The position numbers were made by a program, and so were the translations under genes. Under the pieces are notes generated by a model, which searched no databases, was not told where the DNA came from, and worked only from the letters and a program-made list of their open reading frames with translations. Positions 4,479-16,481 of a DNA stretch of 64,000 nt are shown in pieces (positions within the stretch are counted from its first letter, which is position 1; each line of letters starts with the position of its first letter). Where the stretch lies: positions 62,001 through 126,000 of IMG/VR virus record IMGVR_UViG_3300015261_000001; one strand, written 5' to 3'.

Positions 4479-4911
4479 GTTCGCCTCGCAGTTCTACCAT
4501 CAGGTAGGCAACGAGGTCAGCGAAGTGCTGGTTGCTGGTTACACAGATTTTCTGCGGAACTGGCTGGCCGTCGACCATGGTTTCTACATCACCCATTACG
4601 GCAAACTCTTCGTTGCCCGGGGTCACGCCGTCACGGATCAGACCTTGACGAACACGAGCCAGACGCAGCTTGGCTGCTTCGAGGATCAGGCGACCCTTGA
4701 TCGGGGAAACAGAGTTCCAGCGATCCAGTTGGTTCAGCAGATGGTCCTGTTCTTCTTCCGACATGGAGAAGCTGTCGTGGAATTTCACGTGGTTGCCAGT
4801 CAGCGCACGGATGTAGGCTTCCTGAACGAACTCCGCTTGAGCATGAGCACAGGTGACACCCAGTTCGGTGAGGTGGTCACGATAAGCAATAACGCGTGCC
4901 AAATGAGACAT
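4471..4911 (-). CDS. Hypothetical protein
   Basis: 146-aa ORF tightly packed in the operon. Confidence 0.65.
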   Translation of the reverse strand: MSHLARVIAYRDHLTELGVTCAHAQAEFVQEAYIRALTGNHVKFHDSFSMSEEEQDHLLNQLDRWNSVSPIKGRLILEAAKLRLARVRQGLIRDGVTPGNEEFAVMGDVETMVDGQPVPQKICVTSNQHFADLVAYLMVELRGEHE

Positions 4912-4913
4912 GG

Positions 4914-6287
4914 TTAGATCCCTTTCAGTTGTTCCGAGAATACGGAGATTTCGTTGTTGTTGAGCGCCTGGGTGTAGTGCTCGATTTCTTTAAGCTTGAA
5001 GTCTGCGCCGGAGAAGACCCAGCCGAAGGCACGACCTACTGCACTGCCTTCATACCACGGACGCATCTTCTTGTTGATATCAAGCAGTTTGGTGATTTCG
5101 GTCACCAGCTGGTTTTTATCATTGGCCGGCATTTTCTTGCTGTCCTTCAGTTTAGCAATCAACTGACGGATGGCGTCTTCCATACGGCGATGGTCGGCGT
5201 TATAGATGTCGGAGTAACCACGGGCGAAGTAACCCAGGACGAAACTCAGAGCAAAGGTAACACCACCCACGATTGGGATGATCGCCATTGCAGCACCGCC
5301 CAGCGTAACCGGGATCATGGTCAGGTACATGAACATGATGGACGCCGAGCAGCTGAACAGGAAGTTCTCCATGATCGGCACGATGATACCGCGATCGGTC
5401 AACACACCGATGGCTGCCACGATGCCTTTGTCGCAACCCATGCGGATAGCGTACATGTCTGCCACTACTTCAGAGGTCATCTGAGTGACACCCACAGACA
5501 ACGCGCGCTGATTGTTACGCTGCACGGTCATCTTGGTGAAGTACAGCATAAAAGCTTCGTCGCCTTCGTTGCGGGAGAACTCCAGCAATTCGTCCTGTTT
5601 AGCAGGTTTCATGCCCAGCAGGGTAGCCGCGTCCTTCAATACAACAACGCGGTCTTCATGACGTTTGGCACCACGGTAGAATTGCAGAGCAGTCTGGGCA
5701 ACCAAGTTGTCTTCCAGTACTGTCATAAGCATCATACAGCCAGACCATGCATGACCCATCTCGTGGGTGATCGCACCGGTCGCCATACCTTCAACGGGCA
5801 CACCCCACTTTGCCACTTTGTCAGGCGGGAAGTACGCGTCGAGGTTGCGGTTGATACCGAGTTCAATCGGGATAGAGCAGAAAGAACCGAACACTTTGCC
5901 GGTGGTGTAATCCACACCGCCCTTGAACACTTTTGATTTGTTCTCGGAGTACCAGCGGTACAGAGTGGTCTGAGTAGCTTTCAACAGGTGGTCAACACCT
6001 TGATTGTTTAGCACGTGACCCGGAGAGAAGTAACCGGTGTCGACGTACATGTTGCCAGTGTCGAGCCATTTGATGGTGATGTTGTTGAAACCGATGTAGG
6101 TTTCGATCAGTTTCTTCATCGCTTCTTCGGCACTGTCTTCCAGACGAGACTGACCGTCAATCACACGAATATGCTCTTTCAGGACGCTACACATGGCGTT
6201 GTAAAAATCAGCATTCTGGAAATCGATGAACTCGGTTCCCGTCACTCGAGCATTTGGGAGTTTGGACAGGAAATCCATGGAAATCAT
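4914..6287 (-). CDS. Probable virion protein with M48-like zinc metalloprotease motifs and transmembrane segments
   Basis: THEMGH (HExxH), downstream SEVVADMYA, a long hydrophobic stretch near the C-terminus, and N-terminal VTGTE|FIDFQ putative maturation site. Confidence 0.7.
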   Translation of the reverse strand: MISMDFLSKLPNARVTGTEFIDFQNADFYNAMCSVLKEHIRVIDGQSRLEDSAEEAMKKLIETYIGFNNITIKWLDTGNMYVDTGYFSPGHVLNNQGVDHLLKATQTTLYRWYSENKSKVFKGGVDYTTGKVFGSFCSIPIELGINRNLDAYFPPDKVAKWGVPVEGMATGAITHEMGHAWSGCMMLMTVLEDNLVAQTALQFYRGAKRHEDRVVVLKDAATLLGMKPAKQDELLEFSRNEGDEAFMLYFTKMTVQRNNQRALSVGVTQMTSEVVADMYAIRMGCDKGIVAAIGVLTDRGIIVPIMENFLFSCSASIMFMYLTMIPVTLGGAAMAIIPIVGGVTFALSFVLGYFARGYSDIYNADHRRMEDAIRQLIAKLKDSKKMPANDKNQLVTEITKLLDINKKMRPWYEGSAVGRAFGWVFSGADFKLKEIEHYTQALNNNEISVFSEQLKGI

Positions 6288-8281: not shown

Positions 8282-9355
8282 TTAGCCGCCGAAGACTTCG
8301 CCCATAGCTTTCTGGACGCTGGTCATGCGGGACAGCAGTTGCTTGAAGCACTGGCTGAGCTTGCTCGCCAACACCATCAGGCCACGCAGAGCGCCGAGTT
8401 CAGCATTCAGGTTGTCGCTACCCTTACCAGCTTCTTTACGGCTGGCAATCGCGCCTTCAACAGCTTTGATCGCAGCACCGATTTGGGACTGATGACCTTT
8501 CAGCGCGCTGTTGATCTTGTCGGCGTGGTCGATACCTTTCAGCATTTCGTCCAGCACAGTCTTGGCCTGGGAAACGTTGCTCAGGTCACGAACACCTTCC
8601 AGCTTGGTAAGCAGGGATTGATCGCCGTTGCTGCTCTTCAGTGCGCTGATCATGTCTTTGATCAACGGGCTAACGGTGGTACTGTCGGCAGCACCTTCGT
8701 CAGTCTCGTCGACGGTGGACTTGAGAACCTTCATCACGTTGATCAGCTGGTCGACTTTCTCGCTCAGTTTCTTCTTGGCCTTTTTGTTCAGCTTCGGAAG
8801 TTCGTGAGCAATCATCAGGATCGCTTTCTTCTTGTCGGCGAACGAACCTTTGTGGGCTTCGTCTGCTTCTTTCAGAATTTGATCCAGCGCCGACTTGTTG
8901 GCGTCCGCTTCATGACCCAGAGCCTTCAGAGTCGAGATCTGCTTGGCCAGGGTTTTGTCAGCTTCGGCTTCAGAAGAACCGCCGTTTTCGAACACAGCCA
9001 GTTCGGCCTTGCCGTCGGTGATTGCTTTCTTGGTATCAGCAGCCAGTTTCGGCGCGTCACGTTTGAAGAAGAAGTCCCAGAGGGATTTGAACATCTTCTT
9101 CACGTATTCGAACGCTTCGTTCAGGCCGGTACCGATCGAGCTGAAGAAACCTTCGTTACCAGCAACACGGGCGCTGACCTGACCGCTGGCGCTGAGAACG
9201 CCTTGCATGTAGGTTTGCGCCTGAGTCAGGCTTTCAGTACCTTCAACGTTGGCCAGGGTGTCGTTCAGTGCGTCGAAAATGATTTCAACGTGCGGAACAT
9301 CAGGAACGTCGTAACCTTCCCCAGCGCCTTCTTCGAGAATAATCTCATCCATCAT
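8282..9355 (-). CDS. Internal head protein, paralog of 9380..10423
   Basis: PHVEIIFDALNDT..VEGTESLTQAQ..AGNEGFFSSIG, with an Ala/Lys-rich helical body. Confidence 0.8.
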   Translation of the reverse strand: MMDEIILEEGAGEGYDVPDVPHVEIIFDALNDTLANVEGTESLTQAQTYMQGVLSASGQVSARVAGNEGFFSSIGTGLNEAFEYVKKMFKSLWDFFFKRDAPKLAADTKKAITDGKAELAVFENGGSSEAEADKTLAKQISTLKALGHEADANKSALDQILKEADEAHKGSFADKKKAILMIAHELPKLNKKAKKKLSEKVDQLINVMKVLKSTVDETDEGAADSTTVSPLIKDMISALKSSNGDQSLLTKLEGVRDLSNVSQAKTVLDEMLKGIDHADKINSALKGHQSQIGAAIKAVEGAIASRKEAGKGSDNLNAELGALRGLMVLASKLSQCFKQLLSRMTSVQKAMGEVFGG

Positions 9356-9379: not shown

Positions 9380-10423
9380 TTACAGGCCGAAAACGTTCGG
9401 GATGGATTTGTTGATGGACTTGGCGTCCTCCATCATGCGTTTCAGCAACTGACTGTGTTTAGCAGCGAGAGCCATTGCTTCACGCAGACCGGTGAGCGTT
9501 TTGTTGGCGTCTTTCTTCTTGTCAGCATCGCCTTCGGCGATACGGCCCACGTACTGCTCGGTGGACTCGATGGCGTGCTTGAACTCACCTTCCTTGTCGG
9601 AGATGCTTTTGACATCTTTCTCGATTTCGGTGATGAAGCCGGTGATGTCATCCAGGAAAATACGAGCCTTCGGCAGGTCTTCCAGATCGCGGATGCTTTC
9701 CAGGTACTGGAGGCCTTTGGTCAGGTCGCCGTGTTCTTCTTTCAGAACGTTGACGTAATGGGTGTACTCGACGGTGTCGAGAGCCTTGACCTTTGCTTCA
9801 GCCTGACTGGCCAGAGCAACCAGAGCTTTGAAGATCTCGATCAGGTTACCCAGTTTGTGGGTAAGCACTTTACGAGCCTTCTCGTTCTTCTTGCCCACTT
9901 TACCAGCAGCATGTTCGATGTCGCTTTTGCTGGAAGCCTTGCTGATCTCTTCCGACAGTTCGTCCAGCTCTTTGCTGTCAGAGCTGCCTGCTTTCAGAGC
10001 ACCAACGGCACGGCTCAGGCTGGCCTTGGCTTTGCCGACGTCGCCAATAGCCAGATCGGCTTTAGCTGCTGCGGCGCTTGCTTTCGCTTCTTTGGCCAAA
10101 GCCGGTGCTTCTTTCTTGAAGAAGAAACCCCAGATGGCGGCGAACATCTTCTTGATGTAATCCCAGGTCTTCTGGGCACCGCTGCCGATAGCCGAGAAGA
10201 AACCTTCCATACCGTTTACACGGTCGGCGTTGGTGATCAGGCCGTTGGCTGCCAGGATCGGTTGCATGTACAGCTGAGCCTGGGTCAGGCTTTCAACGCC
10301 GGTGACGTTTTCGATGGTGTCGTTCAGCGCTTCGAAAGCGATCTCGACATGAGGACCATCTGGCAAACCTTCCAGTTGTTCTTCGGCCGGATCCATTTCA
10401 ACAGTAACGGTAACTTCGCTCAT
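9380..10423 (-). CDS. Internal head protein, paralog of 8282..9355
   Basis: PHVEIAFEALNDT..VTGVESLTQAQ..NGMEGFFSAIG. Confidence 0.8.
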   Translation of the reverse strand: MSEVTVTVEMDPAEEQLEGLPDGPHVEIAFEALNDTIENVTGVESLTQAQLYMQPILAANGLITNADRVNGMEGFFSAIGSGAQKTWDYIKKMFAAIWGFFFKKEAPALAKEAKASAAAAKADLAIGDVGKAKASLSRAVGALKAGSSDSKELDELSEEISKASSKSDIEHAAGKVGKKNEKARKVLTHKLGNLIEIFKALVALASQAEAKVKALDTVEYTHYVNVLKEEHGDLTKGLQYLESIRDLEDLPKARIFLDDITGFITEIEKDVKSISDKEGEFKHAIESTEQYVGRIAEGDADKKKDANKTLTGLREAMALAAKHSQLLKRMMEDAKSINKSIPNVFGL

Positions 10424-11076: not shown

Positions 11077-11177
11077 TGAAAGGGCCCTTTCAAAGAAAAA
11101 TGAATAAAGGTTGTTACTTGGGTGTACACCATAAGATACCCCGGCCCCACGAGGGGACCGAGGTACCGTACGGAGGT

Positions 11178-11732
11178 TTACTGCGGAGGGTTTTGTCCCA
11201 TTTGGCGCAACAGTTCCGCGGTCATAGGGTCGATTTCTTGCCCATGAACGTTTGCTGTATTGTTCTGCTTATCCTTAGCAGCTTTCTCTAGCCGTTTTTT
11301 CTCTTCCATCTTGAAGCGTTCATCCTTTCCTTTAATGATGCCCGCGACAATCCGGTCAACTGCGTGTTGCGGCAACTCCAGATAATCCCTTATCGGAATG
11401 TAGTCATGCAACTTGTTCATACCGTACTGCTCACCCACGTTCTCGTAAGACCATGGGTGAACATATGCTGACTCAATACGGTTGTAACGAACGCTGTGAC
11501 CCGGACGGATTTTACCCAGCCTTTCATAACCCATATTGATGTCATGAAGCAGTCCGTTGTTGAGGTGGATAGACTCGGGCATCATTCCGCTCATGTCTTT
11601 CCCCAACAAGTTCATCCACACCTGCTTTGCTTCCGGGTTGTGGAAGAACGACCCTCCTATTACGAGAGGGCTTCTTTGACGACGTTCTGCTTCTTGACCG
11701 CTTCGTTCATCAACATCAACTGGGTATGGGTA
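11178..11732 (-). CDS. -1 frame extension (gpT-like segment) of the 13393 gene; the ORF track calls it 11178..11621
   Basis: The frame is open without stops from the slippery site at 11738 to 11178. There is no properly spaced SD before the GTG at 11621. The YIPIRDYLELP segment resembles tail-chaperone gpT C-termini. Confidence 0.65.
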   Translation of the reverse strand, partial: YPYPVDVDERSGQEAERRQRSPLVIGGSFFHNPEAKQVWMNLLGKDMSGMMPESIHLNNGLLHDINMGYERLGKIRPGHSVRYNRIESAYVHPWSYENVGEQYGMNKLHDYIPIRDYLELPQHAVDRIVAGIIKGKDERFKMEEKKRLEKAAKDKQNNTANVHGQEIDPMTAELLRQMGQNPPQ

Positions 11733-13393
11733 AAAAAAGTCATGAAGGAGTCAATAGGCGTGTAGCCCAGCTGACGTTCTCCTTGGCTTTCGGCCGTGTT
11801 CTTCTTGCATTTCGGGCACTCGTGGTTACGCAGACCGGTGAAGGTGCGCGTCATGTACGGAGCCTTGTTGTAGACGAACCGGGTCAGTTCAGCGTTGAGG
11901 TGATCGTCGATACGCAGAGCGTTCAACAGACCACGGTTGAACTCGTCTGGATTGGAGTCCTGACGGCGGATGACCACTGGCTTACCTTCCGAACCTTCTT
12001 CCGGCAGGATGGTGAACGTGTCAACCCACTGGATGAACTCGGAACCACCCAGGCTGTTGAGGGTGATCGCGATCTGGTCTTGCAGCTGGTTCTCATCAAC
12101 GATCTTGGCACGAATAGCCGCCAGACGTGGGTCGATGTCACCGACGAAGAAGTCGAAGGTGGCGAAAGCTTCTGCCAACGAAGGAGGAGCGATGGTCAGG
12201 CAGATACCACGCGATTCGTTGTAGACCTTGTTGTTGTCCAGGCCGTAGGTGGACTGGTCGATCAGCGCCAACACTTCTTCCGGGGTGTAGACCTTGCGAC
12301 CGTTGGTGATGTTGCCGAAGATGGCAGCTTCATCGTCAGTCTGGATGCCCGGACGAATCTGGGTAAACTTGGTTGGGTCCATCAGGTCGAAGCTGCCGTG
12401 GTCACACGCCGTGTTGATGCAGCGCAGGTCCATACCGATGCCGTCGTCGGTCAGCGAGGCCAGGATGGCGTTGCAGAGCGGATAGAAGTCGGTCACACGG
12501 ATGAGGTTGGACAGGTCCTTGAAATCGATGATCCCGGAAACAGTCGAGGACACGATACGTGGATACAGCCATTCCCACACAGCCTTCATGCCGGCGATGG
12601 TTGACAGCGCCATGCTGTTACCGCCCACCTGGCGAACATAACCACGCACGGTGGAGTTGATGTTGTTGATCAGGTCAGCCGATTCCAGCTTGGCGGCACG
12701 AGTGAACGTGATCGACAAGAAGGAGTTACGCAGCAGCGTGGTGTACTGATACGGCGCAGACTTGGAACGGGAAGTAGCACGGGTCATCGCTTCGGCAATC
12801 GAGAAGCCGGTGGTATCGGCGCCCGGTACACGACCGATGATGTCAGCGATTTCCAACTTGCTGGAGCGACGGCTGACGTTGGTGATATTCGGCTCCAAGA
12901 TCATCTTGGTGCGCAGCAGCATGTCGTCTTGCAGACTGTCGAAGAAGCGATACATCGAAATCGCTTTCTCTTCCATTTCAGCAGCAGACTTGCCCGGGAA
13001 GTTCTTCTCGAGGAATTGCTGCCAGTCGTTGTTGGCAGTTGCCAGCATGCTGTCAGAAGCACGACCACGTTCACGCAGATCGCGGATCGAAGTCAGCGCC
13101 AGCCAGCGGCCGATCAACTCTTGAGCCGCTTCGTTCTCTGCACGGGTGTTACCCATGTAGATAGTCGAGAAGCCCGCTTGACGATCTTCCTCGGTCAAAG
13201 GTTTCTTGACCGGACTGACCGGAGGTACCAACTCCTTCAGAGGAGTATTTTCCGCGGTGTGTTCGTCCATGTAACCGAAAGGAGCCGGGGCTTCCGATTT
13301 CGGGATGGCTGCGCTTACTGCTTCAGCCAAACCACCCAGCGCACCTGCTTCATTAGGCGGGGTAGTTGGGGATTGGTTTTCGTTCTCGCTCAT
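11660..13393 (-). CDS. Putative baseplate-hub/tail assembly chaperone (T4 gp26/gp51-like) with Cys pairs
   Basis: 577 aa, CINTAC and CPKC, ending ..PIDSFMTFF.. over a T7 run. The function is an inference. Confidence 0.6.
   Translation of the reverse strand: MSENENQSPTTPPNEAGALGGLAEAVSAAIPKSEAPAPFGYMDEHTAENTPLKELVPPVSPVKKPLTEEDRQAGFSTIYMGNTRAENEAAQELIGRWLALTSIRDLRERGRASDSMLATANNDWQQFLEKNFPGKSAAEMEEKAISMYRFFDSLQDDMLLRTKMILEPNITNVSRRSSKLEIADIIGRVPGADTTGFSIAEAMTRATSRSKSAPYQYTTLLRNSFLSITFTRAAKLESADLINNINSTVRGYVRQVGGNSMALSTIAGMKAVWEWLYPRIVSSTVSGIIDFKDLSNLIRVTDFYPLCNAILASLTDDGIGMDLRCINTACDHGSFDLMDPTKFTQIRPGIQTDDEAAIFGNITNGRKVYTPEEVLALIDQSTYGLDNNKVYNESRGICLTIAPPSLAEAFATFDFFVGDIDPRLAAIRAKIVDENQLQDQIAITLNSLGGSEFIQWVDTFTILPEEGSEGKPVVIRRQDSNPDEFNRGLLNALRIDDHLNAELTRFVYNKAPYMTRTFTGLRNHECPKCKKNTAESQGERQLGYTPIDSFMTFFTHTQLMLMNEAVKKQNVVKEALS
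11732..11738 (-). promoter_or_regulatory. Candidate programmed -1 ribosomal frameshift heptamer T TTT TTT
   Basis: In-frame ACT TTT TTT ACC. The -1 frame has a TGA five codons upstream and is then open for 184 sense codons. Confidence 0.7.
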
Positions 13394-13407: not shown

Positions 13408-14238
13408 TTATTGAGCTTGCGATTCAGAGACTGGGTCTTGCGGCGGTTGCACAGCCACAATGGATTCATCTTCCGGGTCAACCGGAGGGAGGTTTTGCAG
13501 GTCGTCGATTGGCTCGCCTTCTTCCAGCATTTCTGCCATGCTTTCCAGATCGGCCAGCAGTTCTTTTGCAACGCCGGTGGCGTACAATGGAATCACCGTC
13601 TGCATACGAGTTTCATGCAGGGCTTCCATGTAGTTGTACATTTCCTGACCAGGCTGGATGTGTTCTTGCGCGTACGCTTCGAGAGCATCTTTCTGAGTCT
13701 CGATGAACGCGATGATCTGTTCACGGTAGTCGAACATCAGCTGATGCATGACGTCGGAGATGTGCAGAACGATCTCTGGATAATCCGCTGGCTGTTTGCC
13801 GGCTTTGTCCAGGGTGATAACCACAGTCACGTCTTCGGTGAATTCCACCAGCAGGCGTTCGAAACGCTCAACCAGAGCCGCGTGCTCTTCGCTGAGTTCG
13901 AAACGTTTCTCGTCAACCAGTTTCAGGTAGACCACCACGCCGCTATGCAACTTCACGACCATGCTGATCATATTGCTGATACCTTCCAGCAGATCAGTAC
14001 CGCTGATGAGGTCAGTGGTCTCTTCACCGGCCTTACGGCGGCGTTTCAGTTCACCGCTGTCACGGATGATGTCGTAAATGCTTTTGTGTTTGATCTGGTC
14101 AGCTTTGTCGACGCCCATTTGGGCAAAGGCGGTGTTACTGGCGTGTTCTTGGCGACGAACAGCCTTCACTTTGTCCTTTGAAGCTTTACGGCGTTTGGCG
14201 AGTTTGGCGTCACGACGTTTCTGTTGTTGGTTAGCCAT
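13408..14238 (-). CDS. Hypothetical protein with basic N-terminus and acidic C-terminus
   Basis: 276 aa, begins MANQQQKRRDAKLAKRRKASK. Confidence 0.7.
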   Translation of the reverse strand: MANQQQKRRDAKLAKRRKASKDKVKAVRRQEHASNTAFAQMGVDKADQIKHKSIYDIIRDSGELKRRRKAGEETTDLISGTDLLEGISNMISMVVKLHSGVVVYLKLVDEKRFELSEEHAALVERFERLLVEFTEDVTVVITLDKAGKQPADYPEIVLHISDVMHQLMFDYREQIIAFIETQKDALEAYAQEHIQPGQEMYNYMEALHETRMQTVIPLYATGVAKELLADLESMAEMLEEGEPIDDLQNLPPVDPEDESIVAVQPPQDPVSESQAQ

Positions 14239-14280
14239 AATGCTATGATTTCCCTTTACCTACTGACGAGAATTTACCCG

Positions 14281-15183
14281 ATGCTTATCGAGCGTGATGA
14301 TGCAGTGATCCTAGAGGATGGTGAGTGCTTAGCAGACACCTTCGTCGGTGGCTTGTGGACCACCTTCCGTAATTCAATTCCAAGCCTGCAATCTAAAGAA
14401 TTAGATAAGGCGTTTAATTTCATCATGATGGCTGACGAAGACTCTCTGATGCCTTCGCAGATCAGCCACGTATTGGTTGACGAATATCTCGATCTGCCAA
14501 CCAAAAAGCAAACCGTATACGTGATCATAGCGACCAATATAATCGAATTGCTGGTTCGATTAGGTGTTGTGCTCAACGATGATGTAGCCGGTGAAGACAA
14601 GTTGGCTGAGCTGAATATACTCGCTGGTTTCTTCTACGACCTGAAAGAGTACGAAGACATCATCGGTCTGAAAGGCCTGCTGGAATCACAAGACATTCCG
14701 CCAGTCAACCGTTACCTTCAGGCCATGACTGTGTTCTACGGTGAAGAGTTCGACGTCTCTGAATTCGAGTGCTTGATTGAAGATGTCTCCGAAGTCACGA
14801 TCAAGGCTATTAAAGACGCCTTGTTCAACCCTGATGACGTAGAGACTCCTCCAGCCTCCCTACAGCGTCGTATCATCGAGAACAAAGGTTTCTTGGCCGG
14901 CACTAAAGCTTATGACCACGTGACCTCCAACGGTCAGTTAGGCGGCGCTGTGTCGAACTTCCTGAACTTCTTCAAGGACTACCTCGAAGACTTGCTGGAA
15001 GACGCAACTGAAAAGAACATGCTCCAATATGCCAAGGAAGTTCTTGGCTTTTTTATCATCAGTGAGATCAACGACGAGTGGCTTAAGGATAAAGCCTCGC
15101 AGTATCTCTACTCCATCATCACCGATGTGGTTACCCTTACCAAAGTGGAAGCCATGATTGAAGAAGTGATTATTCCATCATGA
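14281..15183 (+). CDS. Acidic hypothetical protein coupled to the vRNAP subunit gene
   Basis: ATG at 14281 avoids overlap with the divergent gene. ATGA overlap with 15180. Confidence 0.7.
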   Translation: MLIERDDAVILEDGECLADTFVGGLWTTFRNSIPSLQSKELDKAFNFIMMADEDSLMPSQISHVLVDEYLDLPTKKQTVYVIIATNIIELLVRLGVVLNDDVAGEDKLAELNILAGFFYDLKEYEDIIGLKGLLESQDIPPVNRYLQAMTVFYGEEFDVSEFECLIEDVSEVTIKAIKDALFNPDDVETPPASLQRRIIENKGFLAGTKAYDHVTSNGQLGGAVSNFLNFFKDYLEDLLEDATEKNMLQYAKEVLGFFIISEINDEWLKDKASQYLYSIITDVVTLTKVEAMIEEVIIPS

Positions 15184-16481
15184 AAAAACTCGACTACTTG
15201 AAGTGGTTCTTCGATAACGACGGGTACAACGAAAAGGCTGCGCTGCAAGCAATCATTGCGATCCAGTTCGAAGACGAAGATTCCTCGGGCCAGTTCAAGA
15301 AGATTCCGTGTGCTCCCTTTGTTGAAAAGGGTCAGTTCCACGCCCTGATCGACGGTGGTCAAGTCAGCATTGAAGGTGATGTTGAGGAACCCATGTTCTA
15401 CATGGATGAGATCCTCGAGTTGCCGGGTGATTTCCACCCGATGCTTAAGGGTAAGCCAGTTCGTACCACCTTCGGTCTTTTCCTGTTCAACGTGATCCTG
15501 ATCTGGGAACCCTTCAAGGGTGTGGTGGATTACGTCAACAAGGAGTTCACTAAGCCGTTCTTTGAAAACCTGTTCCGTGAGATCATGGTCAGTAACCCGA
15601 AGGAAGGTGAGACAATTCCTGAGGGTAAGGCCAGCGTTAGCCAGTGCTTGATGTTCTCGCACAACTGTAACTTCCTGGAAGGGCTTGGGTCGCACTTTAT
15701 CAAGCCGGGCGGTGTAGACGCCCTTACCGTTCACCCTGACGTACTGGCGTTGCGTGACAAGCTCCTGGAAGAGCACAAGCATGAACTGGATGATCCGGTT
15801 GTCTTCACTCGTCTGATTGACCAAGTGGTTGATCTTGACACCAAGATCATCATGGCAGGTCCGAGCAAGAAGTTCTTCATTGCGAAGAAGTTCATCGACA
15901 ACAGCCGGAAGCGGATGTTCATCGCGTTTGGTATTGAGCCGAATGCGACAGGTGACGGTTGGGTTGCTCTGCCGAAGTCTCTGGATCAAGGTTGGGATCC
16001 TGCGTTCCTGGCTGACTACGTTAACACCTCGGTTGCTGGTTCGTATAGCCGTTCCATGGCTACAGGTGAAGGCGGTGCTCAGGTTAAGGAAACTCTGCGT
16101 CTGATCGCTCGTGCGGTTGTGTCCTTCACACATACCGACTGCAATACCCCAGTCACTGAAGACATCGAAATCATTGAAGCCAACAAGTTCTACTGGGTTG
16201 GTTCGTGGATTCGTGTGGGTGACAAGACCGATCAGATCACTCGTCAGAATGTCGACAAGTTTGTCGGTAAAGTTACCAAGGTACGGGTTCCTCAGTACTG
16301 TACTTTGGTAGACGGTGAATTCTGTAAGGTTTGTTGTGGTGAAGGTCTTGGCGCTTACGGTGAGCGTCTCAGTGCAGAGATCGTGTTGATTCCTACCACC
16401 ATGATGCTGCAACGGATGAAAGCTGCTCACACCGCTGGTAGCAAGACCAACCTGCTGGATCTGGAAGTTGCATTGAAGTAG
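15180..16481 (+). CDS. Virion RNA polymerase beta'-like subunit (phiKZ gp80-like)
   Basis: Bridge-helix-like SRSMATGEGGAQVK, Zn site DCNT...YC...FCKVCCG, and trigger-loop-like MLQRMKAAH. Confidence 0.85.
   Translation: MKKLDYLKWFFDNDGYNEKAALQAIIAIQFEDEDSSGQFKKIPCAPFVEKGQFHALIDGGQVSIEGDVEEPMFYMDEILELPGDFHPMLKGKPVRTTFGLFLFNVILIWEPFKGVVDYVNKEFTKPFFENLFREIMVSNPKEGETIPEGKASVSQCLMFSHNCNFLEGLGSHFIKPGGVDALTVHPDVLALRDKLLEEHKHELDDPVVFTRLIDQVVDLDTKIIMAGPSKKFFIAKKFIDNSRKRMFIAFGIEPNATGDGWVALPKSLDQGWDPAFLADYVNTSVAGSYSRSMATGEGGAQVKETLRLIARAVVSFTHTDCNTPVTEDIEIIEANKFYWVGSWIRVGDKTDQITRQNVDKFVGKVTKVRVPQYCTLVDGEFCKVCCGEGLGAYGERLSAEIVLIPTTMMLQRMKAAHTAGSKTNLLDLEVALK

Follow-up and report, generated by a model that had tools for sequence, protein, structure and literature searches.

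In phage lambda, a -1 frameshift near the 3' end of gene G yields gpGT, a minor, C-terminally extended isoform that shares the whole N-terminal body of gpG, and a -1 frameshift is conserved among the tail assembly chaperones of long-tailed dsDNA phages (Levin et al. 1993; Xu et al. 2004). The dnaX gene of E. coli also gives two isoforms with a common N-terminal body, by tandem tRNA slippage at A_AAA_AAG. The baseplate hub assembly proteins of phage T4, gp26 and gp51 (PF12322, T4_baseplate), do not use frameshifting, but T4 gene 26 also makes two products, gp26 and the internally initiated 26'. Here, we describe a locus from a jumbo phage and compare it with these systems.

We examined a 64,000-nt stretch of a metagenome-assembled viral contig (positions 62,001 to 126,000 of IMGVR_UViG_3300015261_000001; "the window"). 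A preliminary description of the window, made from its sequence alone, had claimed that a run of seven T's near the end of a 577-aa gene is a hidden -1 programmed frameshift site that fuses this gene to an orphan ORF, and that the locus is a gpG/gpGT-like chaperone pair in a nucleus-forming jumbo phage. The observation holds, as every sequence element that was described is present. The features of the locus are:

11660..13393, minus strand: gene 1, whose 0-frame product is 577 aa.
11807..11818, minus strand: a CPKC motif (Cys526 and Cys529), shortly before the Phe-Phe.
11751..11753, minus strand: a TGA that closes the -1 frame five codons upstream of the heptamer.
11732..11738, minus strand: the slippery heptamer T_TTT_TTT, covering the third base of Thr552 plus Phe553 and Phe554; this is the proposed site of tandem -1 slippage of tRNA-Phe.
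11181..11732, minus strand: the trans-frame coding segment in the -1 frame, 184 codons, with its stop codon at 11178-11180.
11652..11668, minus strand: a small hairpin (CTCTCG-TAATA-GGAGGG) with the gene-1 stop codon in its loop, followed by a T-rich tail.
11550..11659, minus strand: a linker of about 37 codons, annotated as intergenic or 5' leader, between the gene-1 stop and the conserved core (LHDINMGY).
11178..11621, minus strand: the "orphan" ORF as mechanically called, with a GTG start and 147 aa; we read it as the C-terminal part of the frameshift product.

The T-run lies in the register ACT TTT TTT ACC, and it is the only in-frame X_XXY_YYZ heptamer in the overlap. Gene 1 uses TTT 3 times and TTC 23 times, and two of the three TTT codons are the heptamer itself. 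The four -1-frame codons between the TGA and the run (CTC CTT CAT GAC) contain no start codon. The -1 frame then reads YPYPVDVDERSGQEAERRQRSPLVIGGSFFHNPEAKQVWMNLL... into the orphan ORF. The trans-frame segment comprises a Pro-rich overlap part (YPYPVDVDE...RSPL), a linker, and a predicted helical C-terminal domain, and joining it to residues 1-554 gives a predicted product of 554 + 184 = 738 aa.

We then identified gene 1. A search of 50,697 phage records found no match at megablast level, so the window phage is new at the nucleotide level. However, PHROG 4585 matches gene 1 from end to end (E = 4e-112), and tblastn gives 51% identity to ORF047 of Pseudomonas phage EL, the nearest relative. 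A profile search gave 1030 family representatives, and a bridging family member (P0081) hits 279 phage records, including phiKZ-like phages. In phiKZ, the gene lies at 71.9-73.5 kb. Gene 1 is the homolog of Chimalliviridae core gene cg18 (phiKZ gp077, Goslar gp081, RAY gp267, and EL ORF047), which is listed only as "hypothetical protein" (Prichard et al. 2023, PMC10299810, Table S3). So, the claim of a nucleus-forming jumbo phage fits. In the literature that we searched, no paper combines ribosomal frameshifting with Chimalliviridae, phiKZ gp77, or SPN3US (other mentions of "gp77" refer to genes of other phages), and none of the 24 chimallivirus GenBank records that we inspected annotates a join.

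To ask if the frameshift site is conserved, we compared 61 homologous loci, which form 35 clusters at 60% amino acid identity. These include EL, RisingSun, FishSpeaker, pTD1, PDCC-1, Miami, PS1, D3, OBP, Yubaba, SXP01, phiKZ, PCH45, an SPN3US-like phage, LucasX, Special G, Totoro, RSF1, KpLz-2_45, Yong XC31, JM-2012, and metagenomic contigs. (Conservation of the run and the -1 register, independent initiation, and sequencing error had been named beforehand as points on which the reading could fail, and all of them came out in its favor.) The invariant Phe-Phe is encoded by N_TTT_TTY in all 61 loci, and the heptamer is a perfect T_TTT_TTY in 58 of 61. The exceptions are imperfect at the X position: a lineage that we labelled L016 has C, PS119XW has A, and Phabio has G. 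The downstream ORF is in the -1 frame and is open from the heptamer in all 61 loci.

Several lines of evidence show that this conservation goes beyond what the protein requires. A caveat is that Phe-Phe is itself an invariant protein motif, so part of the conservation of the site is at the protein level.

First, the first Phe codon is TTT in 35 of 35 clusters, even though TTC is usually preferred elsewhere in the same genes. The preceding codon ends in T in 32 of 35 clusters, across nine different codons (ACT, AGT, AAT, GCT, GGT, GTT, ATT, CTT, and TAT). T4 gp26 encodes the homologous Phe-Phe as TTC TTT, so the protein motif does not need a T-run.

Second, constraint on the -1 frame starts at the heptamer. 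Among the 35 closer lineages, two -1-frame Pro codons (xPxP) directly after it are invariant at 0-frame third positions. The overlap is about 1.7 times more conserved per codon than the flanks. Across the homologs, the density of -1-frame stops within gene 1 is 0.074 per codon, versus zero after the heptamer: in 46 close loci, the last -1-frame stop lies 5-30 codons before the heptamer and the frame then stays open for 167-185 codons. This is more than chance.

Third, the "intergenic" linker evolves as coding sequence. Substitutions among relatives by -1-frame codon position are 712/510/1141 in the linker, an excess at the third position, which is the same pattern as in the downstream core (1917/1382/3369). 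(The alignment behind these counts was built from -1-frame peptides, which could bias it slightly towards a coding pattern.) The linker's length is conserved at 35-41 codons, and it carries conserved peptide motifs upstream of any possible start; for instance, the NLLGK motif lies upstream of any Met in RisingSun and others.

These results bear on a simpler explanation, that these are two ordinary genes, that the T-run is just the codon choice for a conserved Phe-Phe, and that the downstream ORF begins at its own, often non-canonical, start codon or by termination-reinitiation. All 24 of the GenBank records annotate two separate CDSs, PHROGs has the downstream ORF as its own family (phrog_19747, which matches only residues 21-127 of the GTG-started ORF), and Phe-Phe is conserved as protein even in T4 gp26. 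But no start codon or SD is conserved: candidate positions differ between lineages, and six loci have no ATG, GTG, or TTG in the linker. The annotated starts are inconsistent as well (a TTG in EL, a 70-aa stub in D3, and the 80-aa PHIKZ076.4). In the window, the GGAGG at 11653-11657 lies 31 nt before the GTG at 11621. There is a weak private start in this phage (an ATG at about 11594 after GGGGAAAGAC, a weak GGGG SD), but it is not conserved even in a relative with 78% identity. Some independent expression cannot be excluded. Separate translation also does not explain why 61 of 61 downstream ORFs are in the -1 frame, when about one third would be expected by chance, nor does it explain the lack of stops from the heptamer onward, the codon usage at the site, or the invariant Pro codons. 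We consider this explanation unlikely.

Another concern is that homopolymers are error-prone, so that the true run could be T8 in a single 738-aa gene, or the gene could be broken in this metagenome-derived genome. However, two independent rhizosphere-metagenome assemblies carry the identical 2.1 kb stretch with no indel, and relatives from other samples, at 82%, 78%, and 63% amino acid identity, also have T7. The run length and register recur in 60 other loci, including many isolate genomes sequenced on different platforms. And none of the 38 close relatives or the 150 best-scoring profile hits is an in-frame fusion of about 740 aa, which fits a need for both isoforms. An error or a pseudogene is effectively ruled out.

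We also looked for elements that would stimulate frameshifting. Per-sequence minimum-free-energy folds, and RNAalifold on two subgroups (the Y and R groups) and on all sequences together (energy about 0), gave no consensus structure downstream of the heptamer, and we saw no conserved SD-like element upstream of it in the sequence contexts that we inspected. The hairpin around the gene-1 stop codon was flagged as terminator-like and has a local folding z-score of -2.3. A hairpin with the stop codon in its loop is predicted in 21 of 35 lineages, with different sequences, but most of the z-scores are modest, so we do not regard it as a demonstrated element. In the window, it lies 64 nt downstream of the heptamer's last base, which is too far for a classical stimulator (5-9 nt). 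A stimulator is not obligatory for low-level shifting, but U_UUU_UUY without one is not among the most efficient bacterial shift sites, so the efficiency may be low.

That no stimulatory RNA structure was found is one point in favor of a rival, programmed transcriptional slippage, in which the phage (or host) RNA polymerase stutters on the T-run and adds one U to a fraction of the mRNAs, which then encode the same 738-aa protein with no ribosomal event. The signal is a homopolymer, with T7 in the window and in most lineages, and these genes are transcribed by a divergent phage RNA polymerase whose slippage behavior is not known. The protein product would be identical, so none of the comparative evidence (the frame, the open ORF, or the coding linker) separates the two mechanisms. 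(In sequencing runs, we found the window only in DNA contigs.) On the other hand, known bacterial and phage transcriptional-slippage sites have longer runs, usually of 8-9 or more. Many lineages have only T6 followed by C (14 of the 35 non-redundant lineages that we aligned, as well as the SPN3US-like phage and Yong XC31), and PS119XW has only T5 (A TTT TTC), yet it keeps the -1 arrangement. What is conserved is the X_XXY_YYZ pattern with Z = T or C, which means that both A-site codons are read by tRNA-Phe, and not a maximal run length. Transcriptional slippage seems unlikely but is not excluded.

Overall, we propose that gene 1 and the ORF behind it form one recoded gene, with a probability of roughly 0.78. 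In this view, most ribosomes would read ...Met-Thr-Phe-Phe-Thr-His... and stop at the TAA (11660-11662), giving a 577-aa protein whose last 23 residues form a predicted C-terminal helix. A minority would slip back one base on U_UUU_UUU when tRNA-Phe occupies both the P site (UUU) and the A site (UUU), and both tRNAs would re-pair with UUU. Translation would continue as ...Thr-Phe-Phe-Tyr-Pro-Tyr-Pro-Val-Asp..., pass over the 0-frame stop and through the linker, and end at 11178. (The predicted junction peptides are ...TFFYPYPVDVDER in the window and ...STFFYFGGLEVKPDGVVNDLR in phiKZ.) In the 738-aa isoform, the terminal helix would be replaced by a proline-rich flexible linker and a helical domain of about 120 aa. 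Our analysis establishes the anatomy of the sequence, its deep conservation, and the coding-type evolution of the linker. That the slippage is ribosomal, that it is a minority event, that the long protein is made, and what it is for are all inferred, from DNA sequence and by comparison. By analogy with lambda G/GT and dnaX, the purpose would be a fixed ratio of two isoforms with a common body.

The interpretation in the preliminary description was thus partly supported: the comparative evidence strongly supports a hidden -1 frameshift, but the chaperone label holds only as an analogy, in that two products share an N-terminus and differ at the C-terminus and the protein is apparently not in the virion. 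(phiKZ gp077 is not flagged as structural in NC_004629, while its neighbors are, and Goslar gp81 is not mentioned in the virion cryo-EM paper; this evidence is indirect.) Pfam and NCBIfam gave nothing significant for gene 1, the downstream ORF, or their neighbors, and this includes the tail-assembly-chaperone families. On the features that we tested (size, family match, and the annotated or recognized neighbors), membership in the lambda G/GT tail-assembly-chaperone family fails.

We then used predicted structures to look for the protein's function. The AlphaFold2 model of gene 1 has pLDDT 85 and pTM 0.84. Searches of the PDB by sequence (phmmer and profile) found nothing, and searches by fold (Foldseek and VIA-align) matched only a generic helical hairpin (residues 81-155, Z = 7). 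AFDB Swiss-Prot also gave nothing. The model of the trans-frame domain (pLDDT 74) is helical, with its first 30 or so residues disordered, and its fold matched only its own orthologs in BFVD and generic coiled coils in the PDB. The two cysteines of the CPKC motif, with Cys325 and Cys330, give four invariant cysteines, which are a probable zinc site.

The one lead is to T4 gp26/gp51. Foldseek matches the window model to BFVD entries named "Baseplate hub assembly protein, T4-like" or "chaperone" (E = 4e-3 to 9e-2; TM by target 0.44-0.56). An ESM-Atlas cluster of viral proteins of about 540 aa resembles the model (TM 0.44-0.47), and 14% of its members carry PF12322. hhalign places the C-terminal CPxC...FF.L motif on the C-terminus of T4 gp26, but only over 39 columns (probability 50%, E = 1.6e-4). 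Whereas T4 gp26 and gp51 both hit PF12322 (E = 1e-63 and 4e-52), neither the window protein nor 51 close relatives nor 90 distant relatives hit it. This weak link makes a chaperone-type role plausible but does not show it. The most likely role is a non-structural tail or baseplate assembly factor, and this assignment is tentative.

Programmed -1 frameshifting in phage morphogenesis genes is a known mechanism. What is new is that the case sits in a core gene, still labelled "hypothetical", of the nucleus-forming jumbo phages, which are now intensively studied and used in therapy and defense-evasion work. If our reading is correct, it adds an unannotated isoform of about 700-740 aa to every genome of the family, and the small downstream ORFs, which are annotated with arbitrary starts or as stubs such as PHIKZ076.4, are not independent genes. 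This affects core-genome counts, Tn-seq essentiality calls, and proteomics search databases. It also gives a handle on the function of cg18, as two isoforms at a fixed ratio and the weak link to T4 hub-assembly proteins point to tail or baseplate assembly. For the recoding field, it is a deeply conserved shift site with no recognizable stimulator that must work in many host species. More speculatively, the frameshift could be an ancient recoding event that is obligatory throughout the Chimalliviridae and their jumbo-phage relatives (about 1000 protein clusters at 50% identity) and that works on a bare U_UUU_UUY in hosts ranging from Pseudomonas to Vibrio and Ralstonia. The pair (short gp77, and long gp77 fused to the "gp76.4" domain) would then be the jumbo-phage counterpart of the G/GT-type tail/hub assembly chaperones and would descend from the same stock as T4 gp26/gp51. 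This is possible, but the evidence does not make it more likely than not.

Among described systems, phiKZ gp077 is the ortholog of gene 1. It has the same synteny (divergent from the gp079/gp080 virion-RNAP block), the same heptamer (ACT TTT TTT ACT), and the same open -1 frame, although the downstream ORF is annotated only as PHIKZ076.4 and no frameshift is mentioned in the papers that we searched. Like dnaX, the locus would use tandem tRNA slippage on a homopolymeric-type heptamer to produce two isoforms at a set ratio. But dnaX shifts into an almost immediate stop, so its shifted product is the shorter one, and it relies on an upstream SD and a downstream hairpin, which we did not find here. 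T4 gp26 and gp51 (208 and 249 aa) show only the weak fold and motif resemblance noted above, which should be treated as a lead, and a frameshift in T4 gene 26 at the homologous Phe-Phe can be rejected because the codons are TTC TTT; its second product arises by internal initiation.

As in lambda G/GT, a -1 shift near the 3' end of the upstream ORF would yield a minor, C-terminally extended isoform that shares the whole N-terminal body, the frame relation and slippery site are conserved where sequence is not, the products are apparently non-virion morphogenesis factors, and the second ORF is inferred to lack a start of its own. However, there is no sequence or Pfam relationship, and the sizes are 577/738 aa instead of roughly 140/280 aa (G proteins of this family are about 100-150 aa). 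The lambda-type genes lie between the major tail (tube) gene and the tape-measure gene. In the window, the neighbors are a 276-aa and a 208-aa hypothetical gene, in a block that is divergent from the gp079/gp080-type virion-RNAP block, and in relatives the gene is flanked by DNA polymerase or a ribonuclease; none of these neighbors is annotated or recognized as a tube or tape-measure gene. Finally, the heptamer is U_UUU_UUY here and G_GGA_AAG in lambda.

We first examined the sequence around the proposed frameshift site. On the minus strand, a 577-aa ORF (gene 1) is followed 38 nt later by a 147-aa ORF. Near the end of gene 1 the sequence reads ATG ACT TTT TTT ACC, and the run of seven T's lies in the register X_XXY_YYZ. 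The relevant features are:

11660..13393, minus strand: gene 1, 577 aa
11732-11738, minus strand: the T7 run
11751-11753, minus strand: a TGA in the -1 frame
11178..11621, minus strand: the downstream ORF, 147 aa when started at a GTG as the ORF finder does
11652-11668, minus strand: a small hairpin with the gene-1 stop codon in its loop
11139-11154, minus strand: a terminator-like GC hairpin just after the stop of the downstream ORF

Gene 1 uses TTC for phenylalanine 23 times and TTT three times, and two of the three TTT codons are at this site. The four codons between the TGA in the -1 frame and the T run contain no start codon. From the last T of the run, the -1 frame is open for 184 codons, to the stop at 11178. 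A GGAGG lies 31 nt from the GTG. The preliminary description had reported the T run, the preference for TTC, the stop in the -1 frame, the open frame into an orphan ORF, and the poorly spaced GGAGG, and we found every one of these features in the sequence. A slip would give a protein of 554 + 184 = 738 aa with the junction ...FMTFFYPYPVDVDER. (The predicted junction peptides are ...TFFYPYPVDVDER for this phage and ...STFFYFGGLEVKPDGVVNDLR for phiKZ.) The hairpin at 11139-11154 (CCTCGTGGGGCCGGGG, then TATCTTATGG) suggests that gene 1 and the -1 ORF end a transcription unit together.

We then asked if this arrangement could be due to chance. The window has no nucleotide-level relative among 50,697 phage records, but at the protein level the gene pair is widespread. 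Using tblastn, we found gene 1 in 69 phage records (the best was ORF047 of Pseudomonas phage EL, at 51% identity), with the downstream ORF directly behind it. We examined 11 annotated loci (EL, RisingSun, FishSpeaker, pTD1, PDCC-1, Miami, PS1, D3, OBP, Yubaba, and SXP01) and 37 loci from IMG/VR. (One of the IMG/VR loci is the window's own source, a 238-kb uncultivated viral genome.) Three close relatives came from other metagenomes. In every locus there is exactly one candidate site at the invariant Phe-Phe, and it lies 70-88 nt before the gene-1 stop. The site is T_TTT_TTT or T_TTT_TTC in all but one locus; the exception, a locus that we call L016, has C_TTT_TTT (L016 3150-3160). The -1 frame is open from this site through the whole downstream ORF, for 167-185 codons. 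In contrast, within gene 1 and upstream of the site, the -1 frame has a stop every ~13 codons (0.074 per codon), and the last of these lies 5-30 codons before the heptamer.

To see how far the arrangement reaches, we searched with a profile of the family and found 1,030 representatives (50% clusters) at E <= 1e-3. Most of these are 450-650 aa and end in ...IP(I/L)D....FF.L plus about 15-25 residues. Neither the 150 best-scoring hits nor the 38 close relatives include a protein with the ~740-aa length of an in-frame fusion. One distant member bridges to 279 phage records, including phiKZ-like, SPN3US-like, RSL2-like, Erwinia, and Serratia jumbo phages. We checked 15 further loci: phiKZ, PCH45, SPFM17, LucasX, Special G, Totoro, RSF1, PS119XW, Phabio, KpLz-2_45, Yong XC31, Halocynthia phage JM-2012, and three metagenomic contigs. 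Thirteen of these have a perfect T_TTT_TTY, while PS119XW (L064) has A_TTT_TTC and Phabio (L065) has G_TTT_TTT, both near the 3' end of gene 1. All 15 keep the open -1 frame into the downstream ORF. L016, PS119XW, and Phabio are natural variants with an imperfect first position in the heptamer. In three other lineages (PCH45, L057; Totoro, L062; and KpLz-2_45, L066), the 0-frame tail after the heptamer is much longer (118-139 nt, against 40-88 nt elsewhere) and shares a motif (...GG.PLT.L.T.G...), so the C-terminus of the short isoform differs between clades.

In phiKZ, gene 1 is PHIKZ077, with the sequence ...TCA ACT TTT TTT ACT... at the site. The -1 ORF runs for 153 codons beyond the gp77 stop, yet only its last 80 codons are annotated, as PHIKZ076.4. 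phiKZ gp077 is core gene cg18 of the Chimalliviridae (Goslar gp081, RAY gp267) and is listed as a "hypothetical protein" (PMC10299810, Table S3).

We have several pieces of evidence that the -1 frame is translated from the heptamer onward.

First, the downstream ORF is in the -1 frame in 61 of 61 loci (35 clusters at 60% amino acid identity), even though the spacer lengths differ.

Second, synonymous sites are constrained. The first Phe codon is TTT in 35 of 35 clusters, although TTC is usually preferred elsewhere in the same genes. The preceding codon ends in T in 32 of 35 clusters, spread over nine codons for nine amino acids. T4 gp26, a possible remote relative, encodes the corresponding Phe-Phe as TTC TTT, so the protein motif does not demand a T run.

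Third, immediately after the heptamer, two -1-frame proline codons are invariant among the 35 closer lineages (F-F-[Y/R/H]-P-x-P). The C's of these codons fall on 0-frame third positions of variable codons (ACC, ATC, GTC, GAC, and others). The overlap is about 1.7 times more conserved per codon than the flanking coding sequence.

Fourth, the linker of 35-41 codons between the gene-1 stop and the conserved core of the downstream ORF shows 712/510/1141 differences at -1-frame codon positions 1/2/3. This matches the core itself, at 1917/1382/3369. The linker also carries conserved peptide motifs (IGG..HNPE and NLLGK) upstream of any possible initiator in EL, RisingSun, and others.

Fifth, neither a start codon nor an SD is conserved, and six loci have no ATG, GTG, or TTG anywhere in the linker. 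PHROG 19747, which describes the downstream ORF, begins only at residue 21 of the GTG-started ORF. The GenBank annotations of the downstream ORF begin at inconsistent places: a TTG in EL (L001 4321-4695), a 70-aa stub in D3 (L008 3264-3473), and the 80-aa PHIKZ076.4 in phiKZ (L059 11443-11685); the annotation in RisingSun is at L002 4252-4596. (These coordinates are for the loci as we extracted them.) All of these starts lie downstream of sequence that is conserved at the protein level. The downstream ORFs are probably misannotated across the family.

The arrangement is not an artifact of sequencing or assembly. Contigs from two independent rhizosphere metagenome runs are identical over 2.1 kb, with no indel at the run, and the same register occurs in isolate genomes that were sequenced by many laboratories.

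We then considered the mechanism. The most economical explanation is classical tandem -1 slippage of tRNA-Phe on U_UUU_UUY. In this view, both the P-site codon (UUU) and the A-site codon (UUU or UUC) encode Phe, and both tRNAs would re-pair to UUU after the shift. We did not find a conserved stimulator: folding each sequence, and running RNAalifold on the 100 nt downstream, gave no consensus structure, and we saw no conserved SD-like element upstream in the same sequence contexts. A small hairpin that holds the gene-1 stop codon in its loop recurs in 21 of 35 lineages with different stem sequences (including the loci L002 [RisingSun], L004, L005, L009, L017-L019, L023, and L045). In the window (11652-11668), a T-rich tail follows this hairpin, and a terminator scan flags it as terminator-like. 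A caveat is that its z-scores are mostly modest (-0.3 to -4.2), and that in the window it lies 64 nt downstream of the last base of the heptamer. The hairpin might reflect transcription attenuation, a termination pause, or chance arising from dual coding. Alternatively, RNA polymerase might slip on the T run. Transcriptional slippage would give the same protein, and DNA sequences alone cannot exclude it, but it is disfavored because many lineages have only T6C, and one has T5C, while keeping the arrangement.

Overall, the recoding interpretation is strongly supported by the comparative evidence. The sequence arrangement and its conservation were observed directly, while the production of a fusion protein, the ribosomal nature of the slip, and the function of the two products are inferred. 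We put the probability that a -1 fusion protein is made at about 0.9, and the probability that the event is ribosomal at about 0.78. The preliminary description had also called the two products a gpG/gpGT-like chaperone pair; its interpretation was borne out only in part, as that label holds just as a functional analogy. We did not find a description of this frameshift in the literature that we searched, and none of the 24 chimallivirus GenBank records that we inspected carries a joined CDS. Although -1 frameshifting is an established mechanism, this case is new in that it involves a core gene of nucleus-forming jumbo phages, conserved across about 1,000 protein clusters, with no recognizable stimulator.

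We also examined what kind of protein this is. The AF2 model of the 577-aa product is confident (pLDDT 85, pTM 0.84). In the model, the Phe-Phe sits at the start of a C-terminal helix (residues 549-576). In the frameshift isoform, this helix would be replaced by a proline-rich linker, which is predicted to be disordered, and a predicted helical domain (pLDDT 74). Structural searches with that domain gave no informative match. Four cysteines are invariant (C325, C330, C526, and C529, the last two forming a CPKC motif) and probably bind zinc.

Neither sequence nor fold searches identified a relative in the PDB. BFVD gave full-length matches to jumbo-phage orthologs, as well as partial matches to proteins named "Baseplate hub assembly protein, T4-like" or "chaperone" (E 4e-3 to 9e-2). 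A cluster from the ESM Atlas resembles the model, and 14% of its members carry PF12322. T4 gp26 and gp51 (L052 3803-4429, minus strand, and 4480-5229) both match PF12322, so they are paralogs. T4 gp26 ends in ...CPECGKTHAHVIRGLKEFFELL, which has the same CPxC...FF.L arrangement as the jumbo-phage family, and hhalign places the family's CPxC...FF.L C-terminus on the C-terminus of gp26, but with a probability of just 50% (E 1.6e-4). In T4, gene 25 starts in the -1 frame and overlaps the gene-26 stop (TAATG), but the Phe-Phe codons (TTC TTT) are not slippery. No family member reaches Pfam significance, however, so the link to the T4 hub-assembly proteins is a lead and not an assignment, and a role as a chaperone or in hub assembly is tentative. 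Consistent with a non-structural role, phiKZ gp077 is not flagged as a structural protein while its neighbors are, and Goslar gp81 is not mentioned in the paper on the cryo-EM structure of the virion.

The genomic surroundings of gene 1 include these features:

13408-14238, minus strand: a 276-aa gene upstream of gene 1
14224-15183, plus strand: a 319-aa gene in the opposite orientation, similar to phiKZ gp079
15180-16481: the virion RNAP subunit, next to the 319-aa gene
8282-9355 and 9380-10423, minus strand: two adjacent genes of 357 and 347 aa

As mechanically called, the 276-aa and 319-aa genes overlap head to head by 15 nt. One of the two start codons is probably miscalled, or else the divergent promoters are very compact. 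The 357-aa and 347-aa genes look like tandem paralogs: they share ~120 residues at the N-terminus (e.g., ...VPHVEI.FEALNDT..NV.G.ESLTQAQ.YMQ...FFSAIG) and have divergent C-terminal parts that resemble coiled coils. The second of these genes, which is the one that we scanned, matches several PHROGs of unknown function (the best is phrog_21850).

Finally, we compared this arrangement to known systems. Functionally, and by analogy, it works like lambda G/GT and the other frameshifts of tail-assembly chaperones: there is an inferred minor isoform with a C-terminal extension, a second ORF without a start, and a conserved frame. Nevertheless, it is not a member of that family. It fails on size, on profile membership, and on location, as none of its neighbors is annotated or recognized as a tape-measure gene (short of a dedicated search for one). 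It resembles dnaX in using a homopolymer-type heptamer, in this view to set a ratio of isoforms, but it lacks the stimulators of dnaX. T4 gene 26, the possible distant homolog, makes its two products by internal initiation (the second is annotated as 26'). If the homology is real, then the frameshift would be a parallel route to the same end.
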